From Oopsacas minuta (lineage: Eukaryota > Animalia > Porifera): a stretch of 64,000 nucleotides of DNA. The DNA is taken from assembly GCA_024704765.1 (NCBI GenBank), contig JAKMXF010000346.1, positions 130,803 through 194,802 on the forward strand, in the 5' to 3' direction. Under the pieces are notes generated by a model, which did no database searches, was not told where the DNA came from, and saw only the letters and a program-made list of their open reading frames with translations. How positions within the stretch are numbered: the stretch's first letter is position 1; each line of letters starts with the position of its first letter. Below are positions 15,639-56,849 of the stretch, piece by piece. A program made the position numbers and the translations under genes.

Positions 15639-15863
15639 ATGACAAATAATTATTCAAATATACCTACAGCAGATAAATTGTTTGCATCTAGAGATAATCA
15701 AGACTCATTCTCTATTTCTAATCAAGTTAGAAAGATTAAAAAAGAGACTATGATTAAAGGGAAAAGATTCATCAAAGATGGAGAGAAGAGATTACCTGCA
15801 GATATGATGGCAGATGATGAGAAAATTCAAGCGAGGATTCATAAGCAATTTGAAAAACAAAGG
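15639..15863 (+). CDS. EIF2B4: eIF2B delta subunit, first coding exon (75 aa)
   Basis: Ends ...DGEKRLPADMMADDEKIQARIHKQFEKQR followed by GTTAGT donor. Splicing to 43245 gives ...KQFEKQR|VPKRK...ELFSHL, matching recalled human [33 protein letters not shown]...SLFSHL. Confidence 0.82.
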
Positions 15864-17604
15864 GTTAGTTTTATCTCACACATATTGTCTCCTAATTATT
15901 TGTCTACAATATATGGGCTGGGGACAGAAAATGATTGTCAATGAATTCCAGATTTGTCCGAAAGGTGGATTTCTTTTCCATCTTGGCACCATGTGCTACC
16001 ATTTACTTTTTTAAGCTATGCAATCTAACGCTTGTCAAGATATAATGTAAAGTTGTCGTCCAGGCGAGCCCGCTATCCGTGTCACCTATTGCACACCAAA
16101 TGGTACTTTTTTAATATTTTTGATGTGCAACACGTTTATATTGGTTTAAGTGCACCCTGAACAAATTTATGCAATCCCTCAAGTATATTAACAGTTAGAG
16201 CCATTGAAAAATTTCGTCATCCATACATATATAATAGGCTCGGGATCCGAGTTTCATTGGTAGACTTGTCCACATTCTCAGTCATTGGATAATTGTTGTA
16301 GAAGCCTGAAATTCGTAGATTTACCAAATCAATTTGTGTATTTATCTACCTGTTGTATTTTTGTTTTTTTGGCTCATGGGCCGAACTATTCGAGCCTTTA
16401 GGGAGAGGCAATTCGGCACCTTCGTGAATATACCGAATCTGTCCAAATGTCCCTTAGAGGGACTCAAATATTTTGGCCCATGAGTCAAGTACATATATCC
16501 ATACTTGATTTATTATATCTACCTCCATTGCCAATTCCATGCTTCTACCTCAAACATCATGGAGGCCACTGTCATCAAATTTCCCACCTGGCATTCAGAT
16601 TAGTGCTATTAAAATGTATGAGTGACTTCATTTTGGATAGCTATAACTCCCAAGAAACTTCTACGTTGGCAAATTTCTTCAGGTGTACTTATAACATCAT
16701 ATAGATGTGTTCCACTCCAAAGAATCCAGATTGGGGGACGTGAGATTCTAACGTCCCGTCGCCTTATAGCTTGCGCGAACTCTCTAATGGGCGGAACTTT
16801 GCTATACTTTATCTCTAAAGCTATCAGTCAGATCGTTTATGTCCAAAATAGGAAAAGGGTATCTCTCTTTGATGATCTTGCCAAAAGCACCTTTCGGAAA
16901 ACCTAGAATAGCGATCATTTACCATCTGGACAGGATAACTTTCTTGCCAGTACCTGACCGATGCAGCACTTCTAACACCACCAAACCATTAAATTTATTT
17001 GCGCGCTAGTAGTATTTTGTTAGTATGTATTTTCAATTACCATTTAGTAAGTTTCAACCTACTAATGGTACCAAATTTTCATATCGTACGGGAGTATTTG
17101 CATATCCAACCCCTAACCAATTCATTCAATTATTGTCCAGAAGTATAATTCAAGCGGTAACACTATTATTGAGATGTATGCAACAAGGTTGTGGCCTATT
17201 GAAAACTTCATGGTGATTTTTGAGTTATAACATTTGACAGTATATTGTTTTCATGACAATCTACTAGTTTTTTAGGTAATGAAATCAAAACATAAATCAT
17301 TAATGTTTAGCCTACAGACTGGTAGTGTAGCTCAGGGTTAATTGTTTTTGTTCTTTTAGAATGTGGGGGGTGGGGGCACATGCTTCCTGACCACTCGTGT
17401 AGATTCTGAATTACACCAGACCCCGACAGATTATGGGCTCCTGGATCTTCGAAAATATTTCAAGAAGTTCAATATAATTTGTCATTGTATTGTATTTTAC
17501 TACATATTTATCCTCAAATCTTATGGTTAAGATTCCGAATTATTTTCCTGCAATTACCTTCTGTCTAACTTTTGAAACAAAATCTAGTTGTATCTGTATA
17601 TTTT

Positions 17605-18078
17605 GATAGAATTTATTGCAGAACTTTGATCAAAACTTCATATGTCGAACTTTGATCGAATGATGAAAAAGGCAAATTTTGATCAAAGTTCTACTAAAAT
17701 GTCTCCAGTCGAACTTTGATCGAAAAATTGTAGAATTTTGATCGAAAATGGAGAAAATCCAACAAAACTCCATCCAATCATAAAATTAGCATAAATTTCA
17801 CACTAACTTTGTATTTTATTAGTTAGAAAGAGCACCATTGGGAGGGGATTAGGGTTTTATTTCGCTACCTTATGGCTCTGGGAGTATTTATTTGCGTTCG
17901 TTATTAGCTCCTAAAGCACGGGAGTGTGAATTTATGCTAATTTTATGATTGGATGGAGTTTTTTGGATTGATTTTTATTGATCTTTGCAAAATGGCGTAT
18001 CGTTGGAGTTTTTGTTGGATTTTCTCCATTTCGATCAATATTCTTCAATTCTTCCATCAAAGTTCTACTGAAATTCGA
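17605..18078. repeat. Fold-back/MITE-like element with subterminal GAACTTTGATC repeats
   Basis: 36-37-bp near-perfect inverted repeat (CTCCATCCAATCATAAAATTAGCATAAATT(T)CACACT) at ~17768-17804 and ~17923-17959. Further inverted blocks lie outside, with about six copies of GAA(C/T)TTTGATC in both orientations. Boundaries approximate. Confidence 0.6.
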
Positions 18079-20459
18079 TTAATATATACTGATTCTCTAG
18101 CTTAATATTAAATATGCGCAAGAAGGGAGAAAATATTATTAATTTTATAATTCATCACTGATTGAAGTATATGAATTTGTAAAGATTGGTATCTACATTC
18201 TCGATTATCCCGGACTAGCAATTGTAATCAAATCTCTAACATCATTCTGTAATATTTCCAAAGGTGTGTAAAGAGGATTAATTATATTATTTATTATATA
18301 TTTTAACTTTTTGAATTCCAATTAATAATACTGATTTTTACATCAGTTATAGCGTGAATTTCTGGAAAATCAATTACTAATTCATTTTTAATTGTGTTAT
18401 AAGATCAATGTACAAATCATCTTTTGATATTGATTTTCATTTAATTTGTAATTCAGTTTGAAATCATGAACAGCTTTGCTTACTGTGCTGAGCGCTTGCG
18501 AGCATTTTGTGTCATGGGATTCGGCACTTCGTGCCTCGAATTTAACAAAGTATAAAATTGCATAATTTTTTTAATAATTTGTATTTTAACAAATTGTTTG
18601 CTTCCCCTTCTCCCATAAGATATACGATTGTTATTATTCAGATTATCCATTTTGTAAATAGTTACAAAGTTAAGTATTTATATCATAATTATCGATAACG
18701 ATCAAAGCTTTGATGTAGCGGGTAATTTTGTGATTAATATTTTAAGTTAATCAAAATTTGAATATCATTTTCACTTCCATGTAGACTTGGAATGTATCAT
18801 AGAGGTTCATTCACTCATTAAGTAAGTTATTCTGTGAGTAATCAATTGGTTTAATATTATTTTCGGGTTAATTTTGTTTTGATGCGCCATTCCGTTCTAA
18901 TTAACATATCAGAAAACCTTCGGTCTCTTTCGCTTCGTGACAAAAATATCTGATAAAAGAAAATATAAGAATTGTACAAAAATCCCCCAATGTTGCCTCA
19001 TCTCTATCAATTTTTTGCATCCTTACTCCTTTAGGTAGTCAAGTTTAGAGAATGATATTTTTAATATTCATTATTTATAATACACTCCAAATATAAACAC
19101 AAGTAAGTTTTAGTTGTTTTAAGAATATCACAAATTTGTTCCACCTGTAACGTAAGTGTGCTAACTGTTGTTCTAGATTATCTATTTGTTATTAATGTTC
19201 CATTTGTCTAATTATTATTATGTAGCTATTTGACTCTTTTTGGTAATTTCTATTCTACATCTAAATCCATAGAAAAAGCTATGTCATGGGGGTATCATTA
19301 GAGGATTAAGGTGTACTGAATAGATTATGTCAGCATAAGTGAGATTGAATTTGAATTGGCACATGAGTCTGTTCCCCAAACGACACAAGAGGTTGGGATA
19401 TGTGAAGTGGTATTTGTGTAATTTCATAATTAGTAATCGTAACACATAATTTGTTGAGTGCTATACAGGTTCGATCTAACATACTATTATTATTTAGTAT
19501 GAATAGAAACTTAGAGCAGCTCGCAGATTTGACAGATTGAAAACGTTCATTGCCGAATTAGGGAGGCGCAAGGATTTATTCAGAACTCTTTATCAGCAGC
19601 GCAGCTCTTATCGCGAGAATATCTGATTCTCAAGTTGAGTGTGAGTGTGTGTGTTCTAAGTTTGTGATATAATATACACAATTTTTGTCTTTCAAAAATC
19701 GATCACACTCCATAGGAGTGTCTCATAAGTGATGCACTAAGTTGGGTAACTTATGTCAATTTCCACAATCAGCAGCTTAACAATCAGTTACAAAATATAT
19801 CCACTCCCGCGATACCACCTTGCATGTTTACTTCAACATTTGTGCCTACTTATGTAGTACCGAGACGGTATCTATGCGTTCATATAATTGTTGTTTATTA
19901 TGAATGCTTGATCGCCTCATAACGTTAGAGTGATGTTGAGGAGAATAAAAAATTACTTTATCAAATTGTACATTGGTATATAAAATTGTTTTGGTACCAA
20001 AGATAAATGATGTAGTGCACGCACAGTGGCTCCATAGCCTGAAATAGCATGAGAATTTCATGTTGCTATATTCATTGGAAAATATTACTATTGCAATCAG
20101 AATATTTGAAATCTATTCAGGTCAAATTTGAGCTTGTATACTTTCGATTTCGTATTCTGGCATACTGATATGTAAAGAGACGTCATTTTTTTGGAAAATT
20201 TTGTGGTTACTTCAGATAATATGTCAATTTCTACCGCAGTATATTGCATTCCATTTCTCTTAACAATTGTATCTATTATTACTACACGGATAGTCTTAAC
20301 TTAAATATACGCAAATAACTACACACTCTAAATTTAAAAGCATATAATTCCATTTTAAAGTGTAAAATGTGATCGAAAACTTTAGGCCCCTTTAAAAATG
20401 ACAGAAAAACTCATCGTGAGTACTATGTGGGCAGAAAATCTGAGCACTTTAATTCATTC

Positions 20460-21388
20460 ATATTTGATTAGTCCTCAAAATACAACCATTTCCAGACTTC
20501 CCGAAATCCCCCCGAAAATGCTGGTTATTTTAATCTAAAGCGGATACCTAAATTTTTAGTTTTGAATATTTTGTTGTATTGAGCGATATCAGATACGAGC
20601 CTTTGGCTCGCCGCTTCGCGATGTACTCGGCGCATTGCGCCTCGAGGTATTCAACGGACAAACAAACAGATAAAAACAATTGAGGCCTAATGATATTGAT
20701 CTTGTTTACAATATTCAGACTTCGCATACTCGATTACCCCAGTATTGTCGTTGAAAGCATGATTATACCTCAATTTTGAACTTTGTTTACTTTATGTACC
20801 TCAAAGTGAACAAATATTCATGACATGTTATTTACAATACCATATTCGGACTCAGGATACTCGATTACCCCAGGATAGTCGTTGAACTATGATTCTACAA
20901 CAATATTGAAATTGTTTACTTTATATTCATAAGAACAACAATAAATTTGCATGTCATTAATCCAAAAGTATGAAATCGGATTCCGCATGTTCGATATATT
21001 TAGTGAAGTTTTATTGAATTCGTATTACTATCTTGATAACAAGATAAATACATAGTTGTGCTACAATTTCAAAATTCCATACCATAACCTGGGGCTGCTT
21101 TGGCTGACTGGGTTTGCTTTAGCCCAAATACCAAAGCTCCAAAGAAACTAGATTGGATTCAGCATTGTACTTGAAAATGACTTGCCAATTTTTAACGAAT
21201 TTTCAAATATCAGTAGACAATTTCCAAAGCAAATACAATATCTATTCAATAAGAAATTTCAATATTTGGGCTGAAGCAAACTCAGTGGGCCAAAGTAACC
21301 CCAGTTTACGGTACCTAAATCCTTTCCTTGACAACGTACAAACAAACAAACAAACAGACAAACAACAATTGAGATTCAATCATATAGA
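20460..21388 (-). mobile_element. Non-autonomous Helitron-like element(s), head-to-tail, two 5' ends
   Basis: 5' TC starts followed by a GTTT/GTCT microsatellite at 21388 and 20699. Two tandem ~130-bp internal units. GC hairpin cassette 20596-20641. Homologous to the 30537, 40293 and 47717 copies. Confidence 0.7.
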
Positions 21389-21699
21389 TTTATAATGAAT
21401 AACAGAAGGCGTTTGATTTCTTAAACTCTCACTCGTTTGTTATCGTAGCAACAGATGCTTTCTTAGAAACTATCAAATCCCTGAAGCCAAGATCGATTCT
21501 ATTCCTCCTATGTTCTCCCAACTTATTTCTGACCGCAATGTCTACGGCAAACGAAGTGATCTACTCACTTGGCAAGGTCTTCTTTTTCACTCTACACATT
21601 TGCCAGTCCTCTGAAATAATGTCTTAGTGACACAAGCATAGTGTTTCATTGTGAACTCATCCAAGAAGGTAGAAAACCATTGTTTGAATTTACAAACAA

Positions 21700-23540
21700 G
21701 TGTCTCGGACACACACTAAGACCAATTTCGGATTTAATTTCATCTGTAGCTCAGGACTAGGATGTTGATCTTATTTAAATAGCAACTTATGTCCTAAAGC
21801 TATATGGTGATGAAAGCTAGAACCATGAAATGATTAACTCTTGTCAGCAATTTATCGAGCATAGGACATTCGGAAGTGCTGTTAAAAGGTTACCTTTAAA
21901 CAATTCATTGTTTTTGATAGATTTCTTGGAAATCGGGAAACGTTAGTCACAAAAATGCGAAGTTTGTGTTAGCCAGAAAGCATAGTCTTCCCTCCATATA
22001 ACATAATTTCTGACTAGCGTGCTAGAAATATGCTAATCCATCCAATATTAATGAAATTCAGAATTCGGATGGCGTCAATATTGGTTTCGGAATTTCGTAT
22101 ATATATCCATCTTGAAACAAACTGGTTTAAGTACTTCTAGTTATTGGAAATTGTTCCAGAACTATCTGAGAATTAATATCTCTTAAATTTAATTTAAAGA
22201 TGTCTGATGGCTTAGATGGCTTAGGGTGTCATAAAATCTATCATCAGTTTAATGGAATACTGTAGTTCTACACCAAAAATTTAATTCTTTTGGATTCAAG
22301 GTATTTCACAAATTGACTCATCTGGTACTATTGTATGATCAAATGACATCCCAAATTCACCATTTTGTGTACGACCATTGCATTATTGGTTCAAAAGGAA
22401 AATCCGCGAGAACTTCAATTTTATTTGGACACCATTGCTAACTCCGAAGTTGATTCAATTGCATAAGAGGGTATTCTAATTCCCAAAGGACTTGCAAATG
22501 TGACCTTTCACCCCACCATAATAGATGATAAGATTTCAGGGATTTAAGTGGAGCAGATGGCGCTCATTGCCAACTATGTACTACCAATATATCTGAATTA
22601 GAAGAATTAGAAATCGTAAGGTCAGGATTTCCAATCAACTGGAGCATTACTACTGCTAAAGAAATATTTTCTATAGTTGATGCAGGGGAATATTTCTTGC
22701 TCCCTTTTATACAACATCATGGCTTGACCCATCCACGACTATTAAGCATAGACATAATTCCTGCATCTCCTCTACATATATACATTTGCGTCTTCAATTG
22801 GTACGCGAATTTAATATATCAACTACGTTCAAGCACTTATAAATGGTCACCTTCCTCCAGAGTTATAGTTGATTTTATCAAATTTGCTAGCGAGCTTTTA
22901 TATGAAAGACTGGTGTGAAAATGAATCAACCAAGCACTGACGGAGTGACACCTTCCACAGGGAATGTTGCTAGATCTTGTTTCCTCAATAAGAAATACTT
23001 TATCTATTGGATGTGTATCATGATTCCACCAGATCTGAGTGGACCAATACGTACCTTACAAGCCAAACTTTCTGTATTGTTACCCGTCTTTAACTCTAAT
23101 CAAGCAATTGACACGGACAAATTGGATTCGCTTTGCAAAGACACCTATGAATCAATACTCATCGATTTTCCATGGGCAAGTGTAACTCCATCACCTCACA
23201 GACTACGAGCTTATTCTCTAGAATTAATTGAAGATTGTAATAATGATTTCGGACTGAAGGACTTTTCTGAGGAAGCAGTCGAGGCATGCAATAAATTGAT
23301 TTGAAACTACCGTCAATATCTTGCCAGAAAGATGGCATTTACATCAAACGCAAAGGATGCGCTAGTCCGTTTGCTTAGTCAAAGTGACCATGTTCAAGCG
23401 AGTTACCGACAGCGAACTGAGTGCTGAATATGTGGAGAATTTGGTCATGCATGTCGCTTGAGATATATTCTGCGGCAGCTAGTACCCAAGAACAAGATGC
23501 ATTATTCCAATCACTTGTCATTGATAATTGAATTCTAACT
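21700..23540 (+). pseudogene. Transib/RAG1-like transposase relic
   Basis: Ordered motifs DGLDGLGCHKIYHQ (first D), PNSPFCVRP, TIIDDK..LSGADGAHCQLC, SPLHIY, STGNVAR, FPWASVTPSPH and FSEEAVEACNK (E) match the Transib/RAG1 core layout. Stops and frameshifts; no CAC-type TIRs found. Confidence 0.8.
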
Positions 23541-23868
23541 CATAATATTTAGTGGGAAGACAAAAGTATAAGCAAGCTTGAATATCTATCAATTAGACTT
23601 ACAGGGCGGTTAATTAAATATCATTGCTAAATTGATGGATTAAGTTTTTTGGAGAATACAAAGAATTTCAAAATTTCACATCACATGGGTGATCATATTA
23701 AAGTTCATGGGTTACTAAAAATATAAATAATCAACCATAATAATAAATTTTTTGTCAAACTTTAGAATACCTGAAAATACACATAATGCGAAATCCTACA
23801 TAAATTCTGATAGTTGCAATCAACTCGCGATCACTGATTTCCTATATATCAATAGTACATTTCAAATA

Positions 23869-25159
23869 CAAGGGCTGTTCAATCTGTAATGAGACTAATG
23901 TATCGAATTCATATTCTAGTTAATACAGCTCTAAGCCTAATATCAGATTGCAAGCCTAACTTGATTGTCTAACTTCGTTACAATATACTCTTTACTCTAC
24001 TAGCGTATTCTTCAGTATAAAGTTTCATTTGTATACTACATTTTCAGCTAATGGATTTAGCAAAGATTGAAATCGACAAATAATTTCGTACCTGTGGAAA
24101 AAGGGGAATACTGGCTCAAACATTCTTCGTGAAATGCAGGATATTTTCGGTGATGAATGTCCTTCAAAAGCCACCATATTATATATGGATCGAACGTTTT
24201 GATAATGGCGATGAGGAACTCCACGATGACCCTCGTCCAGGTCGTCCGACTTCCTCAAAAACCCGCAGGAATATCGAGAAGGTCCAAACAATTTTAGACG
24301 AGGACAGACAGACGAATAACCCTGCGAGGGTTGGAAGGGAGGGTAGGTATATCAAAAGCCACACTACACTCGATTATCACTGAGGATCTGGAAATCTCGA
24401 AGGTAACTGCGCGTTGGGTCCCAAAACTTCTTTCAAAAGAACAAAAACGCGGAAGGATCAGAGTTAGCGAAGGATTACTTTCAAGATACAAGGCAGAGGA
24501 AGACCTTTTGGATCTTATAGTAACGGAGGGGATGAAACTTGGTTTCATTATTATGAACCAGAGAGCAAAACTCAATTGAGGCAGTGGAAGAGACGTGATG
24601 AACCTGTACTCATCAAGGTAAAGGCCGCAGAATCAGCAGGGAAAAGAATGCCAACAGTATTTTGAGATAGGGAAGGAATCATACTCCTCGACTGGTTGCC
24701 TGAGAAGACAACCTTAAACAGTGATTATTACATTGACGAATAAACTTGAGAGGCGAGGCAAGTTGACATGTGGCGTATTGCTGCAACTTGACAACGTAAG
24801 GCCCGATGTAAGCTCCAAGACAATGGCTGCAATTGACGACTTAGGGTTTGAATGCCTCCCTCATCCCCGCATAGTCCAGACCTGACTCTCAGGGACTACT
24901 GGATGTTTGGATAGCTGAAGAGACCTCTTCGAGGAAAGAGATTTGAGGATTTTAAACGGCTGGAGTATGAATAAAACAGTGGGAAAAAGGGATCCCTAAA
25001 GAATTATATACCACTGGGCTGGAAAAGTTACCAAAACGATGGGAACGATGTATAAAGTCAAAGGGGGACTTTATCGAAACATTGGATAATCAATTATGAT
25101 AAGTATGGGTTTACTATATGAATTATGAAAAAGTCTCATTATTTATTGAACAACCCTTC
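23869..25159 (+). mobile_element. mariner (DD34D) element, decayed
   Basis: 28-bp imperfect TIR CAAGGGCTGTTCAATCTGTAATGAGACT with TA TSDs. WVPKLLS motif and PHPPHSPDL-like remnant. Confidence 0.88.
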
Positions 25160-25668
25160 TAACTATCTAGTAAACTAATACCTATTGCCACTAAATTCCG
25201 AATGAAGCCACTGTGGCACGGTATACACAATTGTCATCAGGCTTTACTTTAGATACTGAAACAATGTGATCAAAATACCTTATCAATTGTATCGGAGTGA
25301 ATTGCTAATTGGAAATACATTTGAGTCACGTTTCAGCAAAATGGGTAAATGTAAGTCAATAGTATGTGTAAGCATTTGACGCATTGCGAGTGAACATTTA
25401 TTGACCAAACAATTTAGAAGTAGTGAGTCATGAATTATACCAAATTATACGTTTTCGGTCAGATCTGGTGACCCTATCATGAGTATCCACATCCATGCTA
25501 TTGTCGATAGCTTCCAATGGACTAAATGGATGCACATTAACTTCATTAAGTGTATTCATCTTACCCTTTCCCTCTGATTCACTTGGACTAGGCTCTCTCT
25601 TCATGGGATCTATATTGTCAGATAATGAAGAAATGTATTCAAATTGTGAACTTGGAAGTGTTCATTTA

Positions 25669-28313
25669 CTACGGGCGTTCAATAAATTATAATCACTGTG
25701 TTACTGTGGGGATTTATAACACAACAATACTATATTGATAGTTGAATATGAATACTTAATCCTCTGTCTACAAGCTAGTATTGATTTTTTCATTATCGCT
25801 CAAAAACTCAACAAGTTATATCAAATTTTACAACAGGTGTTTTTTATCTTTCCATTTATGACATCACTTGGCAAGAATTCTATAATCGAGCAAAGAGTTT
25901 ATGTCAAGGTTCGTACTCTCCTCGTGAAATCTGCACACGAGATACAGGGTGCGTTTTAAGTTCTGTCCCATAGTCAAATCCTCATAACTTTACTACAATA
26001 GATCTTTTACTATTTAAACTTTTATACCAGTTTACTATGATCAATACAATTACATAATCGCACTGATTACTCAATATAACCTCCCTTGCCATGAATGACA
26101 CTTGATATCCTGCCAGGTAGGGCCTCAACTGCAGCACGGAGTACATCTTGGGGTATTTTCTCCTACTCTTCTCGCAATTTTCGCTTCAAAGAGTCTATAC
26201 TCTTGTGAGATTTAGCACAGACTCTGCTTTCGAGAATGGACCATACCGAATAGTCCATTGGGTTCAGGTCTGGGCTATATGGAGGCCATTGCTCTTTCTC
26301 AATAAAACATGGAATATTGCTCTGAAGCCAGGTTTGGGTAACATTTGATGTGTGAGCTGGTGCTCCGTCTTGTTGAAATACAAATGACCCACCATTAAAC
26401 ATGGTTTGGCTAAGGTTCTTCACTATGGGCTCTAAAATTAAGTCACGATAAGTTGTCGAGTTTATTTTTACGCCTGCAGGCACAAAAATTAGTGGCGTCC
26501 GACCAACAGCCGATATTCCAGCCCAAACCATTACTGAAAGTGGTTTTTGGACTCGAGGAACGTACTTCAGATCTGGATCAATAGTAGATGACTTGTGTGA
26601 TATAATCCTGTCGTTTTGAGGGTTCAAAGCTTCCTCAATGGTGAAAATCTTTTCGTCGGAGAATACAATTTTTATAATATCATGATTTACGTGCCTACGT
26701 AATTGTCCTTTACATCTTTGAAGCCTCTTGACCTTTACTTGCTCACTTAGGAAGTGAACTCTCTTTCTTCTGAATGAACGCATGCCTAAGTTCACTTTCA
26801 CAATTTTCCGTACTGAAGACTCTGATACTTTGAGTTCCTGAGCCATTTTCCTCATAGAACGCCGTGGGTTCCTACGGATACGTTCCCGCACCAACTTTTG
26901 GAGTGCTGGAGTCGTTACTGAAGGGGGACGACCACTTCTTGCTTTGTCACAAACTTTCCCAGTCTCGTTGTACCTCCGAATCGTACGATAGACAAACTTA
27001 CGTCTATTAGCGGGAATATTGAGCAACTTCAAAATTTCTTTCTGAGTCTTGCCATTTTTAGCTAACTCAATAATAGCTGACCTTTCGTGTTCCATCAAAT
27101 GAAAATACTAATACGTGAGAATGGTGTATTGTATAATAGGTATAGGTGCTAGCTAAACAATATAGTAAAAGAATCAACATAGTAGTATTAAGGATATGCT
27201 TAGAATATAGATCATACAATAACACATAAAGATGGGACAGAACTTAAAACGCACCCTGTATGCATCTTGATTTAGTTCAAGTCTATAATACGAAAGGTGC
27301 TCTGTCTTATGCAGGAGTCAGAAGATGGGCTCAGCGTTTCAGGCTGGGAAGAAAGTCTATCGAAGATGACCCTCGGCCTGGAGCACCAATTACGGCTGCA
27401 TCTCCCATTAAATCGTGCTCTATCAAGAAACTGATAGACCTAGACCCACATATAACTATCTGGGAACTTCCTAATAGTGTTGGCTTCTCGATGGGAAGTG
27501 TAGACCACATTTTAAGATCACAGCTCAAGTTGCGAAGGTTTGCACTAGATGAATCCCACATTTACTCACAAAGGTCCAGAAAGAGACAAGGGTGAGATGT
27601 TGGCGTAATCTCCTTATATCCTACAAAGAATGCGACCGGCGAAGATTATTTGAAATAGTGGCTGGTGATGAGACATGGGTTCAGCCTAACACACCTTTTT
27701 CCAAACAGGCAAATATGGTGTGGATAGGAAAGCCCTCGGACCCTGATGATATCGCGTCCAGATTTTTAGAACATCGAGAATCATGTATTGCATATTTTTT
27801 GATGCACATGGCCCAGTGGCCCAGGTGATAATTCCAAAGGGACAAACTGTTACTGGAAGCTTCTACACTAGTAATTATCTTGGTGCAGTGGAAGAAAGCT
27901 TGTTGAAGAGGAGAAACGGACTGGTGCTAAAGGGTTGAGATTATTACATGATAATGCCCGTCCTCACAAAACCAAGCAAGTCAAAGAATAAATCTTAAGG
28001 GTGGGGATGATTGAGCTTGAACATCCACCCTACAGCCCAGATCTAGCTCTTTGTGATTTCTATCTCTTCCCTAAGCTTAAGGAATACCTCTCTGGCCGTC
28101 ATTTTAGCAACAGCGCAGTACTGGGATCGGCGATTTTCCAGTATCTCAAACGGATACCGCCGGAAGACGATAAAAATAATTTTGTACGATGGTTGGAGCG
28201 TCTTCAATGCTGTATAAATAATGGTGGGGATTATTTCGAAAAGATTAAACACTGATTGTTTGTGTACAATATACTTTTGGGGATAGTGATCAGAAATTAT
28301 TGAACACCCGTAG
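25669..28313 (+). mobile_element. mariner element hosting the nested DD37D element
   Basis: TIR CTACGGG(C/T)GTTCAATAA with TA flanks. 1329 bp after removing the insert. ORF pieces IEQRVYVKVR...|HLDLVQVY, AGDETWV and HPPYSPDLALCDFYLFPKLK. Confidence 0.88.
25945..27258 (-). mobile_element. DD37D (maT/Bmmar1-type) Tc1/mariner element, near intact
   Basis: Perfect 27-bp TIR CAGGGTGCGTTTTAAGTTCTGTCCCAT and TA TSD. ORF 26067-27098 with FSDEK, QQDGAPAH and a 37-residue spacing to D in SPDLNPMD. Only lesion is TGG>TAG at 26163-65. Confidence 0.95.
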
Positions 28314-29064
28314 TAGTAATGAACAAAGATCATAAATACTCACTATTTGTGATAGTTGATGAGTCTCATAATTATCTTGAAACACTTCCCTATGGACTAC
28401 ATTTCTAATCTATGGATATAGAAGTACCAATTGAGAGATATCATCACCGTATACTACAAATCTATCATCTAGGTGGATCATTTGATTCTCTTTGTCAGTT
28501 TCAGTGCGTTCCCAACTCGGTAGGAAATTAGAGAAATTACTCACTTCAATGGCATCGTGAGGTTACAATTTTTTGAGACGTATATTAATAGCGAGTTTCA
28601 TTACTTTAACATGGCGCCAAAGGACTCGTGCGTATGGGAGGAGTCCCTCACCTGAATGAGCTGAATACGGTCTGCTAATTGTTGTACCGAACCTTTTTAC
28701 TCCCTTTTTCTATTCTTGCTTTGTTTTATCCCACACAAAGTTTTCGGGAAATTTAAGTAGGAGTATTCTCGGGCAATTGGAAAATTTGGTCTGTCCAGAA
28801 CCATCCCATTAGTGTGGAATGCCTAAGGTTCCTACTACAGCATTAATATCAGCAGTTCCCTTGAATGCAACACCCTGCTTATCCTCCAGATGAAGTGCTA
28901 GCCGAACAACGTGTTGCAAATTAGCATGGAGTTCAATGGAGAATATTCTATATCAAGCTTCATATGCAGAACCATATCTGGCTTCCTGATAGTTATGTAT
29001 TTCATTATTCTCTCCGGATTTATCACTATCTCTACGGTAACAAAACTTAATTTTTGCTCTATTG

Positions 29065-45639: not shown

Positions 45640-47460
45640 TTCCATCAGATTGAGGTTGTCACATATGTTTCTCTAAGGATTTGTTTACTGGACGACCTTG
45701 GCTGGAATATTTCCAGGTCGCCGATTCTGCATTTTGTTATTGTTGTCGTGCTTATCAAACATGGGCAACTTTAGGACTTTTCATATTAGAAATCTACAAT
45801 GAACAACTTCAAAGAACTGAAGGACTCGAAATGTCTGTCACTTACCTCTAGGCTTTCCAAAAACGGAAGCATTTTGCGAAAATTAGTATCTTAAGTAGGT
45901 AGGACATCCTTTACTATCCCCAATTCTTAAGACAGTGGCACTCTTCATTTTAACTTGTAGCGTTCAAGACATTTGATTTTTGGACAGTGACATGGACGCG
46001 TTGGGCAAGGTTTTCACTGTGCTGCCCGAAACAGAGGAAATCCTTTGGAGATCCTGTCCTCTTATGCAGTAAACTTATTCTTCTTTCGAAATTCTGATGA
46101 ACTAATACCGCTCAAAATGTTCATCACAACATTCCTAGTATTATTCTCACCCTGCTTACCAAGTCTGTATATCACCATATTCTACTTTCAAATATTTTCT
46201 CTACTCTGTGATGAATCTAAGCATTGAAACAAAGATTAACAAATATCAGTCTTGAGATATGCTGACAATGGGGCTATGCATGAAGTTTTCTACAATTTTG
46301 TTCAATAACACATTGAAAGCGATACTGAAAGCCATGGAAGTATACAGTTAATCTCATTTATTTCCACAATGTTATGATCTGGCAGCTGTGAAGTCGGAGA
46401 AAGAAAGGACTCCAGTCCTTCATGCTTGCTGTGCCCCAGAGGGTTATATTTCCACTGTTACGCTCATAGATAGACCAACTTATTTGTTCTGAGCTCTGAA
46501 TTTTCAATTCGCAAAATTTTTTCCTTCTTCGATCAGTTCGCACATTTAATAAGTTATTCACAGCCATAGTATCACATGATCGAATCAGAGGATTTTTTAG
46601 AATTTTTATGGGAGGCTAACCAATTTTCATGAATTAGAGGGAGTCAAAGTTTGGAGCTAAAGTGCATAACATAGTAATCATGTACTTTGCTACAAGTATC
46701 TCTTAAATACTAACACATGATTGATAATATGGTCGTTAGCGATGAATTCTAATTAGTATATTATTGATAATCATACCACTTCATTCATTAATTTTTCTAA
46801 TTTCCCAATAATGAAAAATTAACAGTGAGATTGACCATAGCTCAGGAGAGCCATTTTGCCCCCCCTCTATTCATCTAGAAAAAACCCTGATCGAATTCGT
46901 TGTCCAAAACGCTCTGTTGTTCCCAAGAAGAGGCTTGGCATGCATTTATTGACTCTTTACGTAGCATCAATCCATGGTTCTCACAAAACCCTGACAGAAT
47001 AGCTGCTGCAGAATTCATTCTAGGATTCGCACGATTTTATTGTAAATCTGGTCCTTTTCCAAGATATACTCCATATGTCAAGCATGGCGGGAACTGCCTC
47101 CAGAACAACGAAATAGACACGACCATATCGGTGGAACTCATTGCAGCTCTAAAGACCACTTTGCGAAAGTAGGCTCGTTTGAGCATTTTGGATCTCTGTT
47201 GTCCAATTAATTACTTAGCACGACATTGCACCACCAATTAAGCGCTGAGTAGGAAATGTAGAGAGGCTTCTAATCACCATATATGGGCTAAAGACGATTA
47301 GGTCAAGCTTATGACCAAGTTGTTGAGAGTTTGTGTCAGAGCTGGAAATTCGTTTTGATAACGAATAATCGTGTATTTTTAAAGCCATGACTGCCATGAA
47401 CCCATTGTCAAAGTTTTTTAAAGTATTGAAATAATGATGTCTTTTATAGAACACTACGTA
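45640..47460 (+). mobile_element. ZMYM1-like hAT relic, interrupted by a MITE
   Basis: RPWLEYFQVADSAFCYCCR (TTF-type finger), QCYDLAAV...FHCYAH and ELEIRF...AM..MNP remnants. Heavily decayed. Confidence 0.65.
46586..46889. mobile_element. hAT MITE (304 bp)
   Basis: CAGAGGATTTTTTAGA / TCTAGAAAAAACCCTG termini; 7-8-bp TSD (G)ATCGAAT. Confidence 0.8.
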
Positions 47461-47716
47461 ATTATTCAGGAATTGTTAAGAAGTAAATTTCAGCTCTTCA
47501 AAGGGGCTATACAACATTACCAAAACCAGAGTGTTAGTCTATTCTCGCTGTTTACTATTTGTATGCCCTCAGCCAGGGGCGGTCGTAGGATTTGACTAGC
47601 CCGGCCCAAAGGCAGAGCTATGAGAAACAACCTAGGTCATGTTTTTACTGTGCCAAATATCACTATTCCATAGAATAATAGCTCAGTTCTAAATTGTTGG
47701 CTCAGTATCTGCGGGA

Positions 47717-48110
47717 TCTATATTATTTAATCTCAATTAATGTCTGGTTGTTTGTTTGTTTTCTTGTCAAGGAATGGATTTACGGTATGCAATTATAAAA
47801 TTGTCGCATAACTATGTATTTATCGTTTTTTCAAGGAAGTATATACGTAGAATTCAATAAAACTTCATCAAATATATCGAACATGCTGAATCCGATTTTC
47901 ACAATTTGGATTATACATATATAAATTTATTGTTGGTTTTACGAAAATATAGTAAGCTAATTAGCTAAATCTCAAAATATACGTGCAGGCTTACTCCAAA
48001 TGGCTGCACAGGGGTAAGTAAGTACGCTGAATCCGAATTTGGAGAATAATGGATAACTCGAGGCGCAATACGCCGAGTTCATCGCGAAGCGACGAGCCAA
48101 AGGCTCGTAT
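47717..48110 (+). mobile_element. Non-autonomous Helitron-like element
   Basis: A|TCTATATT...GTTT microsatellite 5' end like 21388; body like 20900-21050; triple-hairpin cassette 48062-48108 like 20596-20641. No CTAG end. Confidence 0.72.
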
Positions 48111-48884
48111 TTATAATGTTTTCGCTCTACATTTCTCACCATAAGAGATTACACCAGCCAAATTTGGCATGTGTACTTCTAATGACAGCTAGCTGTGCGC
48201 CTGAGCTTTCAAAGATGTCTAATATATACGTTTTCATACCTTTGGACCTCTATAATTTAGCCCAATCAAATTGTAGGGTTTTGCAGTTGGGCGTAAATGC
48301 ATAAACTTAGTTCTGGTAGATATCCGTGTAGTCCATCTCGCCATATTAGCACCGTAATGTATTTGTATTGCATGAAGACAGCAATTCTATTGTTCAATAC
48401 TTTTTATTTTGTGTGTATACATAATACACTTATTTACCATATGATTAATCATATTATCACACATTTAGGAAATATTTCAATATTGTCTTAGAAATTAACT
48501 TCCGCCGGATATTAGGGGTTAACAATGACGTAGAATTCGATTCCAAACTTCCAAACGGAACTATAACTACATTCACCGCACCATCCACTTATTGAGGTTC
48601 TACTTAAGATAATATAATCCGAGTATAAGGAATAATTAAAAAGATGAGAGGGGACTAAATATTTTAGTTAGCAGAGCATAGAATGAGACACTGACCATTG
48701 ACCACTCTCTTCGTTTTATCTCTCAGGAATTATTGGACCTTGGAACACTGAAGCATGTTGATTTTCTTCGGCAAAGATCAGCTGAGATTTGGAGAGCGAA
48801 GCCTAGAGACTGAATCTACCTCTGACCTGGTATTATGGAGGAAAGACCTTAGATGCAACGAATTTTAGTCAATTCTTCAATATA

Positions 48885-49799
48885 CAGCCAAGGGACAAAA
48901 GTATTCGACCACACAAATATATTGTCATAAATTGTATACTCTTTCCCGCTCCTATATATTGTGTAGTCTATATTCGTAGCTGCAATCTAGTAATTTGCAT
49001 AGAATAACATATGTTTTTCAAGAATTTCAAATAAATATTTTCGATTTACACTTTTTGAAGGTGTTATTTATTAATAAACATTAGATAATTATTGATGGTC
49101 AAAATATGTGGTAATTCAAAACCTATTAAGAATCTATAATTTCTGACTTGATATTTGAATTCTACGTAGGCGAGTTACCCCAGATTACAATTTTCAATGG
49201 GATTGGACAATTTTTGCCAAAGTTATAGAAGAATTTCAATTTGTGCCATTTGTGCCACCTTTTGTCCAAGGTGGCACAAGTGGCCGCTACGAAGAGGTTA
49301 TTTTGTAATTCAAGGGTTAACATAGTCATATCATTCGAAGATATTACTTTGACTTATTCTTCCTAACCCTAGTTGATTTCCTTGTGGTGGCGCTTTATCC
49401 TGCTACTTGTGCCGCCTTGGGAAAAGGTGGCACAAATGGCACAAATTGAAATTCTTCTATAACTTTGGCAAAAATTGTCCAATCCCATTGAAAATTGTAA
49501 TCTGGGGTAACTCGCCTACGTGGAATTCAAATATCAAGTCAGAAATTATAGATTCTTAATAGGTTTTGAATTACCACATATTTTGACCATCAATAATTAT
49601 CTAATGTTTATTAATAATTAACACCTTCAAAAAGTGTAAATCGAAAATATTTTTTGAAATTATTGAGAAACATATGTTATTCTATGCAAATTACTAGATT
49701 GCAGCTACGAATATAGACTACACAATATATAGGAGCGGGAAAGAGTACACAATTTATGATAATATATTTGTGTGGTCGAATACTTTTGTCCCCTGACTG
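48885..49799. mobile_element. Tc1-like fold-back MITE, 915 bp with ~397-bp TIRs
   Basis: TA|CAG(C/T)CA(A/G)GGGACAAAAGTATTCG termini. Arms 48885-49281 and 49405-49799 about 97% complementary by eye; 123-bp spacer. Confidence 0.92.
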
Positions 49800-49813
49800 T
49801 ACATTAACTATGA

Positions 49814-52108
49814 CACAACTCAACAGGATTTCTCATCAGAGATACATACATTTATCTTAGCATACTTTCGAATGCTGAACTGAATCTGCGATCAGAATTT
49901 CTCTAGCACGTCTAGTTATTCTGAAATCCAATATCCATTTTTTCAATAGTATGGTATTACCTAGTTACTAAATTGCTATATGAGCATGCCTATTTTGATT
50001 CAATTATCTGGAATATAAATGACTTTACTTATTTGAATTCAAGCAAATCAAATCAAATTATAAACATGCATCGTAATTGTAGAACTCATCCCGACAATTT
50101 CTGTTACGTTTGTGGTCTTTTTTGCGTAAAATCACAAAGACGACCAATCACGAATCAATTAAAGAACTTATACAAATTGTACTTCGAATGTCCACTTGGT
50201 GACCAAGACAAGTCGTGGGCACCACATGTTATATGCACTTCTTGTCAAGTGGACTACGTGATTGGTTGAACAAAAGGAAAGTTTCAATGCCATTTGCAAT
50301 ACCCATGGTCTGGAGGGAACAGAAAAATCACCTTGATGATTGTTACTTTTGCCCTATCGACATTACAGGATTCTCAGCCAAGAATAAGCACGCTCTTGTT
50401 CACCCAGACTTGGATTCTGCTCGCAGGCCAATTCCACACGACATCTCATTACCAATCCCAATTCCCAAGCCACAGCAAATTAAAATTGGGTCTGATATGG
50501 TGGAAGATGTTCATGCAGATTCTACAGATGCTAATTATGTTCCGGAAGATGAATTACTAGAGCCACAAACATTTACACAGGGAGAATTGAATGACCTGGT
50601 CAGGGATCTAGACTTATCTAAAGACAAAGATGAACTCCTTGCATCCAGGCTCAAACAGAAAAACCTACTCGACAAAGATGTCCTAGTATCCCACAATCGC
50701 AAGCGAAATTTCGATCTCGCTCAATACTACACCACTGATGGTCCACTGTGCAATTGTAATGATATCGAAGGACTCTATGCAAACGTATTACAAGAACATT
50801 CTACCTCTGATTGGCGCCTTTTCATCGACTCGTCAAAACGCAGTTTGAAAGTTGTTCTGGTGCATAACGGAAATCTAAAGCCTGGCGTTCCAATTGCTCA
50901 CTCCGTCTATCTCAGAGAAACCTTCGTCAATTTGCAGGAAGTTTTGGAGGCAATACAATATAGAACACATATATGGAATATCTGCGGTGATCTTAAGATA
51001 ATCGGGCTATTGATGGGCTTGCAACAAGGTTTTACAAAGTATTGTTGTTTCCTATGTCTATGGGACAGCCGAGCAACTGGTGAACATTATAAAAAATGTG
51101 ATTGGCCGAAGAGAACCTATGAAGTGGGGAAAACCAATTTACAGCATTCGCCATTGGTAGACCCAAACAAAGTTTTCTTACCCTCACTTCATATTAAACT
51201 TGGATTAATGAAAACATTCGTTAAACAATGGGCAAAACAAATTCAGCAGGATTTCTGCATTTGGTTGGCAAATTTCCGAAACTAAGCGAGGCAAAGTTAA
51301 AAGAGGGAGTATTTGTAGGACCACAAATCAGACAAGTATTCAGAGATCCAGATTTCGAGAAGACATTATCCGAATTAGAAATGTGTGCTTGGAATTCATT
51401 CAAATGGGTTTGTGAAAACCTTTTGGCTAACAAGAAGTCGTCCAACTACAGAGAAGGAGTGGAAACCTTGCTTAACGCATACGAGAAGATGGGCTGTCTC
51501 ATGTCGCTAAAACTTCACTTCTTGCGCTCTCACCTTGATTTTTCCCTGAGAACCTTGGTGCTGTAAGTGATGAACCCCTAGGGTGAGAGATTCCACCAAG
51601 ACATACAGGAGATGGGAACCCGATACAAAGGTTTCAGGAATGAGGGCATGATGTCCGATCACTGTTGGAGGCTCTTCAGAGATAATCCCAACAAGATATA
51701 TAAATAGAAGTCATACTCTCAACACTTTTAATTTAGTTAGCTACCTTTATACTTCTAGATGGATGTGTATTTCCCCTTAGTTTGTGAGTAGTTGATACAT
51801 GCATGAATGTGAATAATTATATGTAAGAGCTAGGATAATAACTGATATTACTTTGGCATTAATCTAAAACATCGAAACATTGATTTATTTCAGATGGCTA
51901 TCATGTAAGAAGACAAAAAGACAGCCACTACCATAAAATAACAGGAAAAATTTAGGAAATACATAAAAATCGTTGACTTGTAGATGGAAAAACCTGGACG
52001 TGCCGGAAAGAATCTGAAAGCAGATTTGAATTCAGCGTATAAAACTAGCTTAGAAAATGTCAATCTAATACTTGATGAGAAAATGAAGTTAAATTTTGTT
52101 GACCTGTG
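49814..52108 (+). mobile_element. Chapaev3-like transposon, copy B (inverted near-identical twin of copy A)
   Basis: Same termini and same translated ORF pieces as 37030-39329; >99% identical by manual comparison. Confidence 0.9.
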
Positions 52109-52799
52109 TAATTAATTTCATGAATTATAACTCGGCTTCTGATGGATTTTGGATAAGTGTTTTTGGTCACTAATGGATTGTATTTGTAAAGGGCTTTAAT
52201 TTCTGATATTTTTTGTTATTTGATGCTACCCATTGGGTAAATACTTATGGATTACACTTCTTTTTTGCGAAAAGTTTGATTTGAATGCAACTGAATTAGT
52301 TAGCCTAAATTTTTAACAATACAATGCCGGAATTTAATACTTTCCAATCCAAAATTTCGTGCAATTCCACTTGGTTCTACAGCAGAAACTGATACAGCAG
52401 AGAATAATATTACATTACTGCTAAATTTGCTACTTTTATCTCAAAGTGCACATGGCGGATGTTTTCGAACCTTATTGCTGGAATAAATGCAGTAACTGGG
52501 TGCATCCCCTCATTTTGGCCCCAAGATGTTTGCTGATATTGATTAATTTTTCTAGCTAGTTTATGAAGAAGAGTGTGAATTCAGAAACTGTTTATTGGAA
52601 GGCTATAGTGACTCTGAACGTTTAGTAGCATATAATTGTGATTCTTGTAAAGTAGTTGTGATGTCTGTTTCTGATAATTTGTTGAGGCAATTACTATGCG
52701 GATTGATTCCCTCCTAACTAATCTACTTTATTTTTGTCTATTTTGTATGCCATCCCTCGAAAATAATACAAGGGTTATTTACTGCTCTTAAACCAACGA

Positions 52800-54131
52800 G
52801 TGTGAAGTTAGCGCAAGATTTTCCTGAGCACACTTCAGTTGCAAATATGAAGCATTTCTCGTTTTTGGATTTTCATTTCAATTGGAGAACAAGTAGAAGG
52901 CATAGGGACGTTTATGAATATTAATACTCTTTTGAATTTTCGAATTTATTTTGCATTTTTTTGAGCATTACAAAATAATTCTTTTTCACATTTTTTTCGA
53001 AATCAAAATTTCAATTATCTGAACCTGTTTCAGAACATTGGACGTTTGTTATGTCAACATTTTGCAACATTTTGTTAACATTCCTGTCAGGTTTTCCAAG
53101 CTTTCACATTTTTTATGTTCACATACTACTATTTTTCATATACTTAGTTTTATTTAAATTTAATATGCAGAACAAGTAGAAGGCAGAAGGACGTTTATGA
53201 ATATATGAAATAATTTTGAATTTTGAAGATTATTTTGTAATATTTTTTATCATCATAAAGAACTTTTTCTGAACACTTTTCGAAATTCAAATTGCAACTA
53301 TCTGAGTATGATCACGAACTATGGGCGTTTGTTATTGAAAATTTTTGAATTGGTTGGCTTTCCTGTGTCCTGAGTGTAAGATACACACTCAAGAGATGTC
53401 TTCCTTATGTAACTTAATACAATTGTTTGAATTTGATATTTATGTCACATCATGTTCTAACACTCCAAACTAGTTAGATTTAGGCGTTACGAACATTCCC
53501 TATGACAATTTTGTTTGATATAACCCTCGCAATTCATCAATATCATAAATTATATTCTACTTCAATGTAACAAATACATCTTTTCAAATTCTTACTGCTC
53601 AACAGAAAGGAAGAGTCAATGGAAAAAAAGTACCTACTTGTACATATACTTTCATTGACTTTTCTTTATCTGCTGAGCAGTAATAATTTGAAACGATTTA
53701 TGTTGTTCCAGTGAAGCAGAATATAATTTGTGATATTTATGAGTTGTGAGGGTTATATACAATCAAAATTTGCACAGGGAATGTTGGTATCGCCTAAATC
53801 TAAGTAGTTTGGAATGTTAGAGAGCATCTTACACTCACGACACAGGAAAGTCAACAAATTCAAATTTTTGGCATAACAAACGTCTAATGTTCTGAATAAT
53901 GTCCAGATAGTTGAAATTTGAACTTCCAAAAAAGTGATAAGAAAGATTGTTTTTTGTGATGGTTATAATATTGTATAATTGTTTTTTTCAAAATTCAAAA
54001 TCTTTTTTTAATATTCATAACATCCCTATGCCTTCTACTTGTTCTCCAATTTTTTTCCAAATCCAACCACAAGAAGTGCATCAAATTTACAACTGAAGTT
54101 TGCTCAGTAAAATCTTGCGCTAACTTCACAC
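52800..54131. repeat. 1.33-kb diverged fold-back element with one-arm ~280-bp duplication
   Basis: Perfect terminal 23-bp IR GTGTGAAGTTAGCGCAAGATTTT. Inverted similarity continues to a centre near 53635. Block AGAACAAGTAGAAGGCA...ACGTTTATGAATAT occurs at 52887 and 53169, and inverted at ~54011-54048. No TSD. Confidence 0.85.
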
Positions 54132-54199
54132 AAGTCTCAAACCAAGCTACATGCAGCTTCTCCATTACAAATTATTTCTTTGATAGAAACTCTCAGCTA

Positions 54200-55507
54200 C
54201 AGGGTGGCTGCTAAGTTCTGATGCAAATAATTTTCTCCATTATATTTTTACAACTTGGAATATAATGTTAATATTGCATATACGACTATTTACTACTGTT
54301 ATGATTCAATTACTAAAATAGTTATTCTATATATCCTCCTTTTTTGGAAATTACAGCCTTGAGTCTGGTAGGGAAACTTTCCACTGCAGCAGGCACGGTT
54401 TCCGGGGTATTTTCTCCATTCGCGACATAAAGACTTTTCAGGGACTTTATAGTGCTGTGTGAAACCGAACAAGCCCTATTCTCCAAGATGGACCAAAGAG
54501 AATAGTCAATTGGATTTCTGTCAGGACTACATGGAGGCCCTTCTTCCTTTCGGATAAAATCGGGGATTTTGCCCTCTAACCAGTCCTGTGTGGTAATCGC
54601 CGTAGGAGCAGGAGCACCATCTTGTTGTAAAACAAATGGCTGTCCGGAAAGCATTGTCTGACTCAGGTCTTTACAACAGTCTCTAGGATCAAGTCCTTGT
54701 AGGTTTTCGCGTTGATTTTCACTCCAGCAGGTACGAAAATCAATGGCGTGCGGCCAACAGCAGAGACACCAGCCCAAATCATCACTGAGAGAGGTTTCAT
54801 TTTCCGACTGATGTACCTAAACTTATCGGGGATCTCTGAGATAGCTGTAGAGATCACACGATCATTTTGAACATTCGTAGCCTCAGCTATTGTGAAAATC
54901 ATTTCATATGTAAAGATGATATTTTCGAGTGCGCCGGTAGCGTGTCTTGCAAGTAATGCCTTGCTTCACAACAATCGTTTTGTCTTGACTAACTCTGAGA
55001 GGAAGTGTACTTTCTTTCTTTTAAAACAATGCATTTTCAAGTCATTGTGTACCACTTTTTGGACAGTTTGACGTGCAACTTTCAACTCCTTGCCCATTTT
55101 TCTCATGGATAACCATGGATTTCGCCGCCATCCGTTCTCTCACCCTCTTCTTGAGGTCTGCGGTTCTCACAGAACAAGGACAACCAGATTTTGGTTTGTC
55201 GTTCGTGTCCCCAGTTCATTGTAACGTTTTATTATCCTGTAGATGAATGCTCTCCGTCCTTTAGCAATATTTAACATGTTTAAAATCTCAGGAGGGTTTT
55301 TCCCGCCTTGTATAATTCAATAATTACTGAACTCTCATGACTCATGGTCAATAGTATAAATTTTTGTGAAAGATTTAGGTTAAATCGAATTTGAATGCAT
55401 TAAGAAGGTTATATGAAAAGTCCTAGATAGTCAAAATACTGTAAATGCATTACGATCAAGGTTATATTGGAATTGAATTTTGGTATCAGAACTTATCAGC
55501 CACACTG
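54200..55507 (-). mobile_element. DD37D Tc1/mariner element, decayed
   Basis: 23-bp TIR CAG(G/T)GTGGCTG(C/A)TAAGTTCTGAT with TA TSD. QQDGAPA...SPDRNPIDYSLW motifs. Confidence 0.9.
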
Positions 55508-56356
55508 TAAATATTTGTGAAATTAACAATAATAAACCATGTTTTTCTACATGTATATTCTGTGTGATCATGTTTACTTCGATACATGAAAATTGTATTT
55601 GTATATTATCTTAATGGGTGAAACTATTATGATAGTTCCATGCCGTTATCATAATTCTCAAGCTAGTTCTTAACATGAAATTTCCTTGCTATACCTCCTT
55701 AACTTATATAGGTTCTACTGTACCCAAACGTTCTTTTTCTATTACAAAACTGTGGTTGGGTGGAGCTTCATTCATTGCTACGCCTAACCTGCTACCAAAT
55801 ATTTGTGTATATATCTGAGCGTTTAGTACTAGATTTCAATTTTAGTATAATCATTGTAACTTTTCATGATGTGTATATTTGTATGCAAGACTGTGTGAAA
55901 TTGTGATGTCAGGAATTGGATCATATTAAAGTTGCTCTACAAATCAAATTTGAATAATCAAAACATCAATATTCACTGAGCAGTCTCGAATTTATGTGAA
56001 TTCGATTAGCCAAAAGGTGACAATTTATCTATCTTTGCGTACAAAGGTATGCGTTTTATCCAAGCCTCTGACATGCCTGCACTAGCATATCCATATAGCC
56101 CAGGGTTGAAAAAGAATGAAAATTTGTAGTCTCCTGCTTATGCTTGAAATTTCGTTTGATCGAATTTGTCAATTGTAATCCGTAACAGGGACTCAAATCT
56201 TATACTTTTATCTGTTGATATTTATGTCATCAATCATATTTTTTATTTCTAATCATTTTATTTGGTGTAAATATCACTCACTGGCTACACTTCCATGCTG
56301 TTTGCTAGAAATCCTTTCTTTTTGTTTGCCATTCTAAATATCTTCTCTTTATTTAG

Positions 56357-56849
56357 ACCTGATTTCCGTGGATTGGAATGCGCTCGAGTATTTTCTAATC
56401 AGGGAATTTCATGCTCTTACCAACTTCTTAGTGCTATGACTTTCGCTATTAAAGAATGTAGTTTAGTTCTAGTAAGCGTTGAAGGAATATTTTCTAATGG
56501 TGCTGTACTTGGAAATGTCGGAACTTCAATGATATGCCTTGTAGCCAAGATGTACAACGTTCCTATCATGGTTTGCTGTGAGAGTTTTAAATTTATTGAC
56601 CGAGTTCAAATTGATGCATTTGTTTATAATGAACTCGGAGATTCAGATGAAGTTTCTAGATTACCCGATGGCAGATTCGGTCCATTATACAAATGGAAGG
56701 ATATTGACGCACTGAGGATCCTAAATTTGAAATATGATATTACTCCTCCTGAACTAATTGATGTAATTGTTACTGAGAGTGGAATGATACCTTGTACATC
56801 CATACCAGTTATATTACGTTTACAAACTAGTATAGAGCGTTTCGATTGA
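56357..56849 (+). CDS. EIF2B4: eIF2B delta subunit, last coding exon
   Basis: TTTATTTAG acceptor completes the AGA codon (DSR|PDFRG). NVPIMVCCESFKFIDRVQIDAFVYNEL and LNLKYDITPPELIDVIVTESGMIPCTSIPVILR are diagnostic of the IF-2B delta C-terminus. Exons total 225+599+493=1317 nt = 438 aa + stop. Confidence 0.95.

Follow-up and report, generated by a model that had tools for sequence, protein, structure and literature searches.

Long introns rich in transposons are familiar from large animal genomes and from Drosophila genes of the heterochromatic type, such as light, rolled and the Y-linked fertility factors. Those Drosophila genes are essential, have short exons separated by introns of tens of kilobases that are mostly transposon and lie in transposon-dense neighbourhoods, and the size of their introns varies greatly among related species. 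The locus described here, which lies in a stretch of 64,000 nucleotides (the window) from the glass sponge Oopsacas minuta (GenBank assembly GCA_024704765.1, contig JAKMXF010000346.1, positions 130,803 to 194,802 of the forward strand), is like them in each of these features. It is very probably the single functional gene of this species for eIF2B delta, the regulatory subunit of the guanine-nucleotide exchange factor of eIF2, and thus the orthologue of EIF2B4 and GCD2, with a transcript of about 41 kb and two GT-AG introns. The likeness to the Drosophila genes is drawn from sequence, and the setting differs, in that the sponge genome is compact (61 Mb, a median intron of about 140 bp, 34% repeats) and the insertions are mainly cut-and-paste DNA transposons. 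What the locus shows, and shows clearly, is a phenomenon already known and ordinary in kind; it does not point to a new mechanism.

The gene lies on the forward strand. Coding exon 1 (15639..15863) begins with the ATG at 15639 and has 75 codons, ending in phase 0 at the donor AGG/GTTAGT, where the slash marks the exon boundary. Intron 1 (15864..43244; 27,381 bp, GT-AG) consists of a unique part, 15864-20021, and a remainder that is mostly interspersed repeats. Coding exon 2 (43245..43843; 599 nt) follows the acceptor tttAG/GTT and ends in phase 2 at the donor AAG/GTACTT. Intron 2 (43844..56356; 12,513 bp, GT-AG) is at least 62% interspersed repeats, and coding exon 3 (56357..56849; 493 nt including the TGA at 56847-56849) follows the acceptor tttAG/A. 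A coordinate check in the window gave 1317 nt for the summed exons, or 438 codons and a stop, and the two introns made up 96.8% of the 41,211-bp gene span. These exon coordinates and phases, and an intronic share of about 97%, had been put forward by a first-pass annotation made from the letters of the window, and all of them matched the sequence.

The homology searches were made with each exon separately. In the Pfam family IF-2B (PF01008, cut-off 22.4 bits), exon 2 matched profile positions 2-140 (E 3e-18, 66.6 bits) and exon 3 positions 142-280 (E 7e-35, 121.1 bits), so that exon 2 codes for the helical N-terminal part and the first half of the IF-2B domain and exon 3 for the second half. 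Human EIF2B4 and yeast GCD2 have the same full PF01008 domain, which in the sponge is divided between the two exons. Among solved structures, exon 2 aligned to residues 167-363 of the human eIF2B-delta chain (E about 1e-32 for the full-length chain; the best match, a truncated eIF2B-delta chain, had E 5e-33) and exon 3 to residues 369-521 (E about 5e-44; best match 2e-44). The competing subunits were far weaker, with E values of 1e-4 (exon 2) and 3e-10 (exon 3) for alpha and 2.5e-6 for beta, and the sugar-phosphate isomerases, the MTNA/RBPI paralogues, scored 2e-18 or weaker against exons 2 and 3. The comparison with EIF2B4/GCD2 orthologues that the first-pass annotation had proposed as a check, run in this way exon by exon, gave eIF2B-delta chains as the best structural matches. 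Because the two halves of PF01008 are contiguous and both exons align to the eIF2B-delta chain, exons 2 and 3 adjoin in one delta gene with no gap between them. The sponge gene has only two introns, whereas the lophotrochozoan eIF2B-delta genes examined have about nine or more, and its N-terminal extension is shorter than in bilaterians, with 75 residues before the first junction compared with about 150-190 (longer in some matches).

Exon 1 had no Pfam family match, and a word search of the protein collection with it returned only the window's own open reading frame (ORF) of 101 residues, the exon being too short and too diverged for that tool. When 1.8 billion representative proteins were searched with exon 2, many full-length animal orthologues were found, and those matches that were looked up, from Patella, scallop, Babylonia, Ridgeia, an ostracod, a frog and an owl, were named eIF2B subunit delta. 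A motif just before the junction is common to the orthologues; it reads KRVPDHVKADLPDTQKKVAKKLEKQQ/VPQR in Patella, while the end of exon 1 continues into exon 2 as EKRLPADMMADDEKIQARIHKQFEKQR/VPKR. A hidden Markov model (HMM) was built on 14 animal orthologues, taking from each the 34 residues that end at the junction and none that belong to exon 2, and one mammal-like match (P0012) was excluded from the profiles. When this model was run against all stop-to-stop frames of the window in six frames, the sole match was the ORF at 15627-15941 (E 8.7e-6), the next-best ORF having an E value of 0.62, and the last position of the model fell on codon 15861-15863, directly 5' of the GT. The delta-specific segment that directly precedes the helical domain, KR[VL]P..(4-5)..DD...Q.K..K.LEKQQ VP.R, is thus represented in the sponge gene, in the form KR[VL]P...DD...Q...K..EKQ-VP.R. 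The junction motif by which the first-pass annotation had joined exon 1 to exon 2 is thus real, specific and unique in the window.

A genome-wide DNA search showed that the exon 1 region is single-copy DNA and hence does not belong to a transposon. Conservation across animals extends over the final 27 residues of exon 1, which run straight into exon 2; this indicates that exon 1 is coding and is joined to exon 2 in phase 0. The whole stretch from 15222 to 20021, about 4.8 kb that takes in exon 1 and the 4.2 kb of intron 1 next to it, had no match elsewhere in the genome; its sole repeats are short local inverted repeats at 17608-18031. This unique stretch may be promoter-proximal regulatory DNA of the gene.

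Related loci were retrieved from ENA assemblies, in which the closest matches were ORF-level fragments with 67-81% amino-acid identity. The acceptor (AG/GTACC.AAACGTAAG) and the donor (CCAG/GTA) of exon 2 were at identical positions in two relatives, and the acceptor of exon 3 was at an identical position in five. The whole gene is present in one relative, represented by L010/L013. Exon 1 of this relative, ATG...KRLPADMMLDDKKIQGKIKKQFDKQN/GTGAGT (...FDKQN/GTGAGT), has 38 codons, is 62% identical to residues 38-74 of exon 1 in the window and ends at the same codon before the GT; introns 1 and 2 measure 15,467 and 416 bp there. A second relative showed no exon 1 within 18.3 kb upstream and no exon 3 within 10 kb downstream, and three further relatives had no exon 2 within about 9.9 kb upstream of exon 3. 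Intron 2 is longer than about 10 kb in four relatives, one of which also has an intron 1 of more than 18.3 kb. A tblastn match at 1281-1388 of L004 was considered as a candidate exon 1 and rejected as a simple repeat.

Between the sponge gene and its relatives the nonsynonymous divergence (dN) was 0.12-0.21, whereas the synonymous divergence (dS) was 1.8 or more or, being saturated, could not be computed, giving a dN/dS of about 0.1 or less for several relatives. At the nucleotide level the alignments covered the exons only, plus four matches of 64-109 bp inside repeat segments of the window, and apart from these short repeat-derived matches no conserved non-coding sequence was found in the comparison with the relatives. 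Judged by these comparisons, purifying selection on the exons is strong, the division into three exons dates far back in the lineage, and intron length varies widely. The three-exon eIF2B-delta gene of the first-pass annotation was thus upheld by homology, by the four splice sites kept in relatives, by its single copy and by purifying selection.

The selection data bear directly on the possibility that the locus is a decaying pseudogene, the exons of a disused gene scattered by transposons. The extreme transposon load would fit such a history, as would the fact that no annotated full-length protein was found. However, the frames are intact and the four splice sites canonical, the low dN/dS was seen against several relatives, and the same structure occurs in species whose synonymous sites are saturated. 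Moreover, this is the only eIF2B-delta copy in the assembly, exons 2 and 3 each occurring once in the 61,460,524 bases searched (365 contigs, about 36% G+C). A pseudogene is therefore very improbable and was rejected.

Several points nevertheless weigh against the complete three-exon gene, most of them concerned with the 5' end. The splice junctions are predicted from comparison. Exon 1 has only 75 residues, and exon 1 of the relative L013 begins at the position of Met38 in the window. The motif KAERRA.QE.QRA.K, which lies in a variable region outside the Pfam definition and is present in most animal and fungal delta subunits, was missing; an HMM of it, run over six frames of the whole window, gave a best E value of 4.8 and no upstream coding exon. 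A candidate acceptor (ctaacattctatAG) ends at 15626, 12 nt 5' of the ATG, and could belong to an upstream exon or a spliced leader. Finally, a near-identical inverted pair of repeats around exon 2, described below, could in principle mislead an assembler. The short exon 1, the absent KAERRA motif and the Met38 start of the relative leave the true start codon and the 5' end uncertain.

It is accordingly possible, although clearly less likely than the complete gene, that exons 2 and 3 are right while the 5' end is incomplete or different. Translation might start at Met38, an upstream exon or a trans-spliced leader might be joined at the AG at 15626, or transcripts might start within intron 1 and be translated from Met33 of exon 2. 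In addition to the 38-codon exon 1 of L013 and the missing AERRA motif, such a 5' end would agree with the branch-point-like ctaac followed by tatAG immediately 5' of the ATG, with the putative trans-spliced leader of about 37 nt reported in another glass sponge (PMC10282587) and with the exon-2-only protein that ORF callers produce from an internal Met. It is opposed by the conservation of the last 27 residues of exon 1 in animals and their continuity with exon 2, and by an in-frame stop at 15624-15626. The branch-point-like sequence and the acceptor of the window lie within 15610-15641, and in L013 (3035-3084) a ccttcAG stands about 36 nt 5' of the ATG of exon 1. The AGs upstream of both ATGs could serve a 5' non-coding exon or a trans-spliced leader.

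The repeat content of the introns was mapped by genome-wide DNA searches and copy number. At least 18 repeat segments were mapped, with at least three nested cases, and interspersed repeats made up at least 76% of intron 1, at least 62% of intron 2 and at least 71% of the intron DNA overall. The families are widely dispersed, some with at least 40 genomic copies. The long transposon-filled introns proposed by the first-pass annotation were in this respect borne out. Its further suggestion that the introns had become sinks for transposons did not hold, since the flanking intergenic DNA on both sides, from about 6000 to 15221 upstream and from 57000 to 64000 downstream, is likewise full of transposon remnants; the flanks are as transposon-dense as the introns, and the introns are therefore not special sinks.

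A young insertion in intron 1 is a Tc1/mariner element of 1.32 kb at 25942..27262 on the reverse strand, with perfect 30-bp terminal inverted repeats, DDE_3 and HTH domains and at least 11 copies at 99% identity. It interrupts an older 1.35-kb host element (25664-25946 and 27260-28320). A composite element at 28644..35099 carries nested inserts at 29380-31529 and 32356-33706, which belong to separate high-copy families, and uninterrupted colinear copies of it are present on contigs C296 and C20. It is followed by a second Tc1/mariner element of 1.36 kb (35098..36460, reverse strand; DDE_3 E 5e-17, HTH_Tnp_Tc3_2) with copies at 96-98%. A 2.3-kb family, with at least 25 copies at 95-99%, is present at 37025..39331 on the reverse strand and, beyond exon 2, at 49813..52113 on the forward strand. 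Intron 1 also holds a member of a 2.6-kb family at 40064..42680 (at least seven copies, 90-96%), and intron 2 a nearly palindromic foldback repeat of 0.93 kb at 48879..49805 (at least 40 copies at 91-93%, matching both strands) and a member of a 1.3-kb family at 54198..55515 (at least 13 copies, 90-93%). The first-pass annotation had counted more than 20 insertions from at least six superfamilies; when about 35 intronic ORFs were searched against Pfam, Tc1/mariner was the only one that could be classified. No Pfam family was returned for the ORFs in the 2.3-kb and 2.6-kb elements, and the Atlas search with them gave only unnamed eukaryotic clusters. Most of the intact transposase ORFs are antisense to the gene, the usual tolerated orientation, in numbers too small for a test.

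The inverted pair around exon 2 consists of the two 2.3-kb copies. Only about 17 positions or indels distinguish them, and their similarity does not extend beyond the element ends; they are two recent independent insertions. A third copy, 98% identical, lies at 126858-129155 of contig C346, about 1.6 kb before the window start, and its nearness suggests local hopping. Near-identical inverted copies on both sides of exon 2, in a window that reaches the end of its contig, are the circumstances under which one might suspect an assembly artefact, that is, the exons of a compact gene with mis-joined or collapsed transposon-rich DNA between them. On the other hand, five relatives assembled independently have exons that are likewise widely separated, the ends of the transposons are complete, and copies without an interruption elsewhere show the nested insertions to be clean. 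The order and orientation of the exons all fit one gene. There is hardly any likelihood that the long introns are an artefact of this kind, and mis-assembly was rejected.

The inverted pair could form a pre-mRNA duplex of 2.3 kb around exon 2. A more far-reaching proposal is that the long-intron, transposon-rich state is no accident of a single genome but a heterochromatin-like domain kept around the gene through glass-sponge evolution, and that in O. minuta the pair folds the pre-mRNA, leading to circularisation or skipping of exon 2. If so, transposon insertions would directly alter the output of a factor of the integrated stress response, but we regard this proposal as improbable.

The gene would most likely be expressed by an ordinary route, in which all 41 kb are transcribed and the introns are then removed by U2-type splicing. 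A promoter upstream of 15639 would give a primary transcript of about 41 kb, from which removal of the 27.4- and 12.5-kb introns would leave the 1317-nt frame for 438 residues; both the transcription of the whole span and its splicing are steps that we infer. The introns have GT-AG ends and a polypyrimidine tract, conserved in relatives, as expected of U2-type cis-spliced introns, with long pyrimidine tracts and branch-like motifs (CTAAT/CTAAA) at both acceptors. The first-pass annotation had raised recursive splicing as one way in which such introns might be removed. The Drosophila type of recursive splicing found no support in the sequence, as a scan for ratchet sites of the form AG/GTRAGT found none in the sense strand of introns 1 and 2, other forms of recursive splicing lying outside that scan.

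Both introns very probably predate the divergence of these species. Since then, cut-and-paste DNA transposons inserting again and again in a transposon-rich neighbourhood would have lengthened them in a different way in each lineage. Long introns at both positions are common to diverged relatives, yet intron 2 is short in L013. ORFs for THAP9 or P-element-like transposases (THAP, TNP-like RNaseH) were present in the long intron 1 of two relatives, at 1-1865 and 4729-5541 of L013 and at 11032-11895 of L014. The transposon families in the relatives' intron 1 differ from those of the window, which indicates that the same intron was filled independently in each lineage. In addition, genome searches found no repeat match in the sequences adjacent to the four splice sites (15864-20021, 42681-43244, 43844-44112 and 55516-56356), and the transposons therefore entered existing introns rather than creating them.

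The opposite order of events, an introner-like origin in which transposons that landed in a formerly continuous coding region gave rise to the introns within glass sponges, would account for the intron positions in other animals. In three lophotrochozoans, Patella, scallop and Ridgeia, a single exon covers the residues around junction 1, and the intron closest to junction 2 lies 5-6 codons downstream of it, so that in their orthologues junction 1 lacks an intron and junction 2 has none at the exact position. An intron position in common with other animals, such as the first-pass annotation had drawn for the human gene, is thus unsupported for these three. Nevertheless, no splice site has a repeat match beside it, the 416-bp intron 2 of L013 uses the same site, and the lophotrochozoan intron that comes within 5-6 codons of junction 2 makes an old intron just as likely. 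We consider an introner-like origin improbable and rejected it in favour of transposon insertion into pre-existing introns.

According to its published description, the O. minuta genome has 365 scaffolds, a size of about 61 Mb and a G+C content of 36% (PMC10280926), with 1.59 introns per gene, a mean intron of 341 bp, a median of 139.5 bp, a mean gene size of 1.8 kb, 34.1% interspersed repeats and 15.4% DNA transposons (PMC10280926 and its supplement). With 1.59 introns per gene, a gene with two introns is typical here; their lengths are atypical, at about 80 and 37 times the genome mean. If spliced as proposed, the gene indicates that a genome with mostly very short introns still processes introns that reach about 200 times the median length and have kept their positions through saturated synonymous divergence, and the locus is a usable test case for the handling of long introns in an early-branching animal.

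The main practical value of the locus concerns annotation. The published annotation relied on mapping of RNA-seq reads with a 5-kb intron ceiling (PMC10280926), and no full-length glass-sponge eIF2B-delta protein was found among the 1.8 billion representatives, which held single-exon fragments only. The first-pass annotation had warned that an ORF track would mistake the exons for unrelated genes, and the protein collections do hold ORF-only fragments for Oopsacas minuta and its relatives. The ceiling, together with the presence of exon-sized fragments only, implies that genes of this shape are systematically missed by that annotation, and standard settings miss such genes. This matters for the O. 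minuta genome paper, the headline of which is the absence of core metazoan genes, and its intron statistics cannot include introns of this kind.

Two other IF-2B loci were found by the family search in the assembly, at G000:C66:646107-647003 on the reverse strand and C133:516361-517345 on the forward strand. Both are compact, one being intronless and the other in two pieces about 230 bp apart, and the eIF2B-delta gene is the sole member of the family in the assembly with long introns. Three IF-2B loci were detected in all, compared with the alpha, beta, delta and MRI1 usual in animals, and one locus of the family may be missing, missed or similarly hidden. Further upstream in the window, an ORF of 673 residues on the forward strand (1168-3189) encodes an N-terminal helical bundle of the TFIIS/Med26 type, and a CCCH zinc finger begins at its very end. 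This ORF probably represents the opening exon of an adjacent host gene situated before the transposon-rich stretch.

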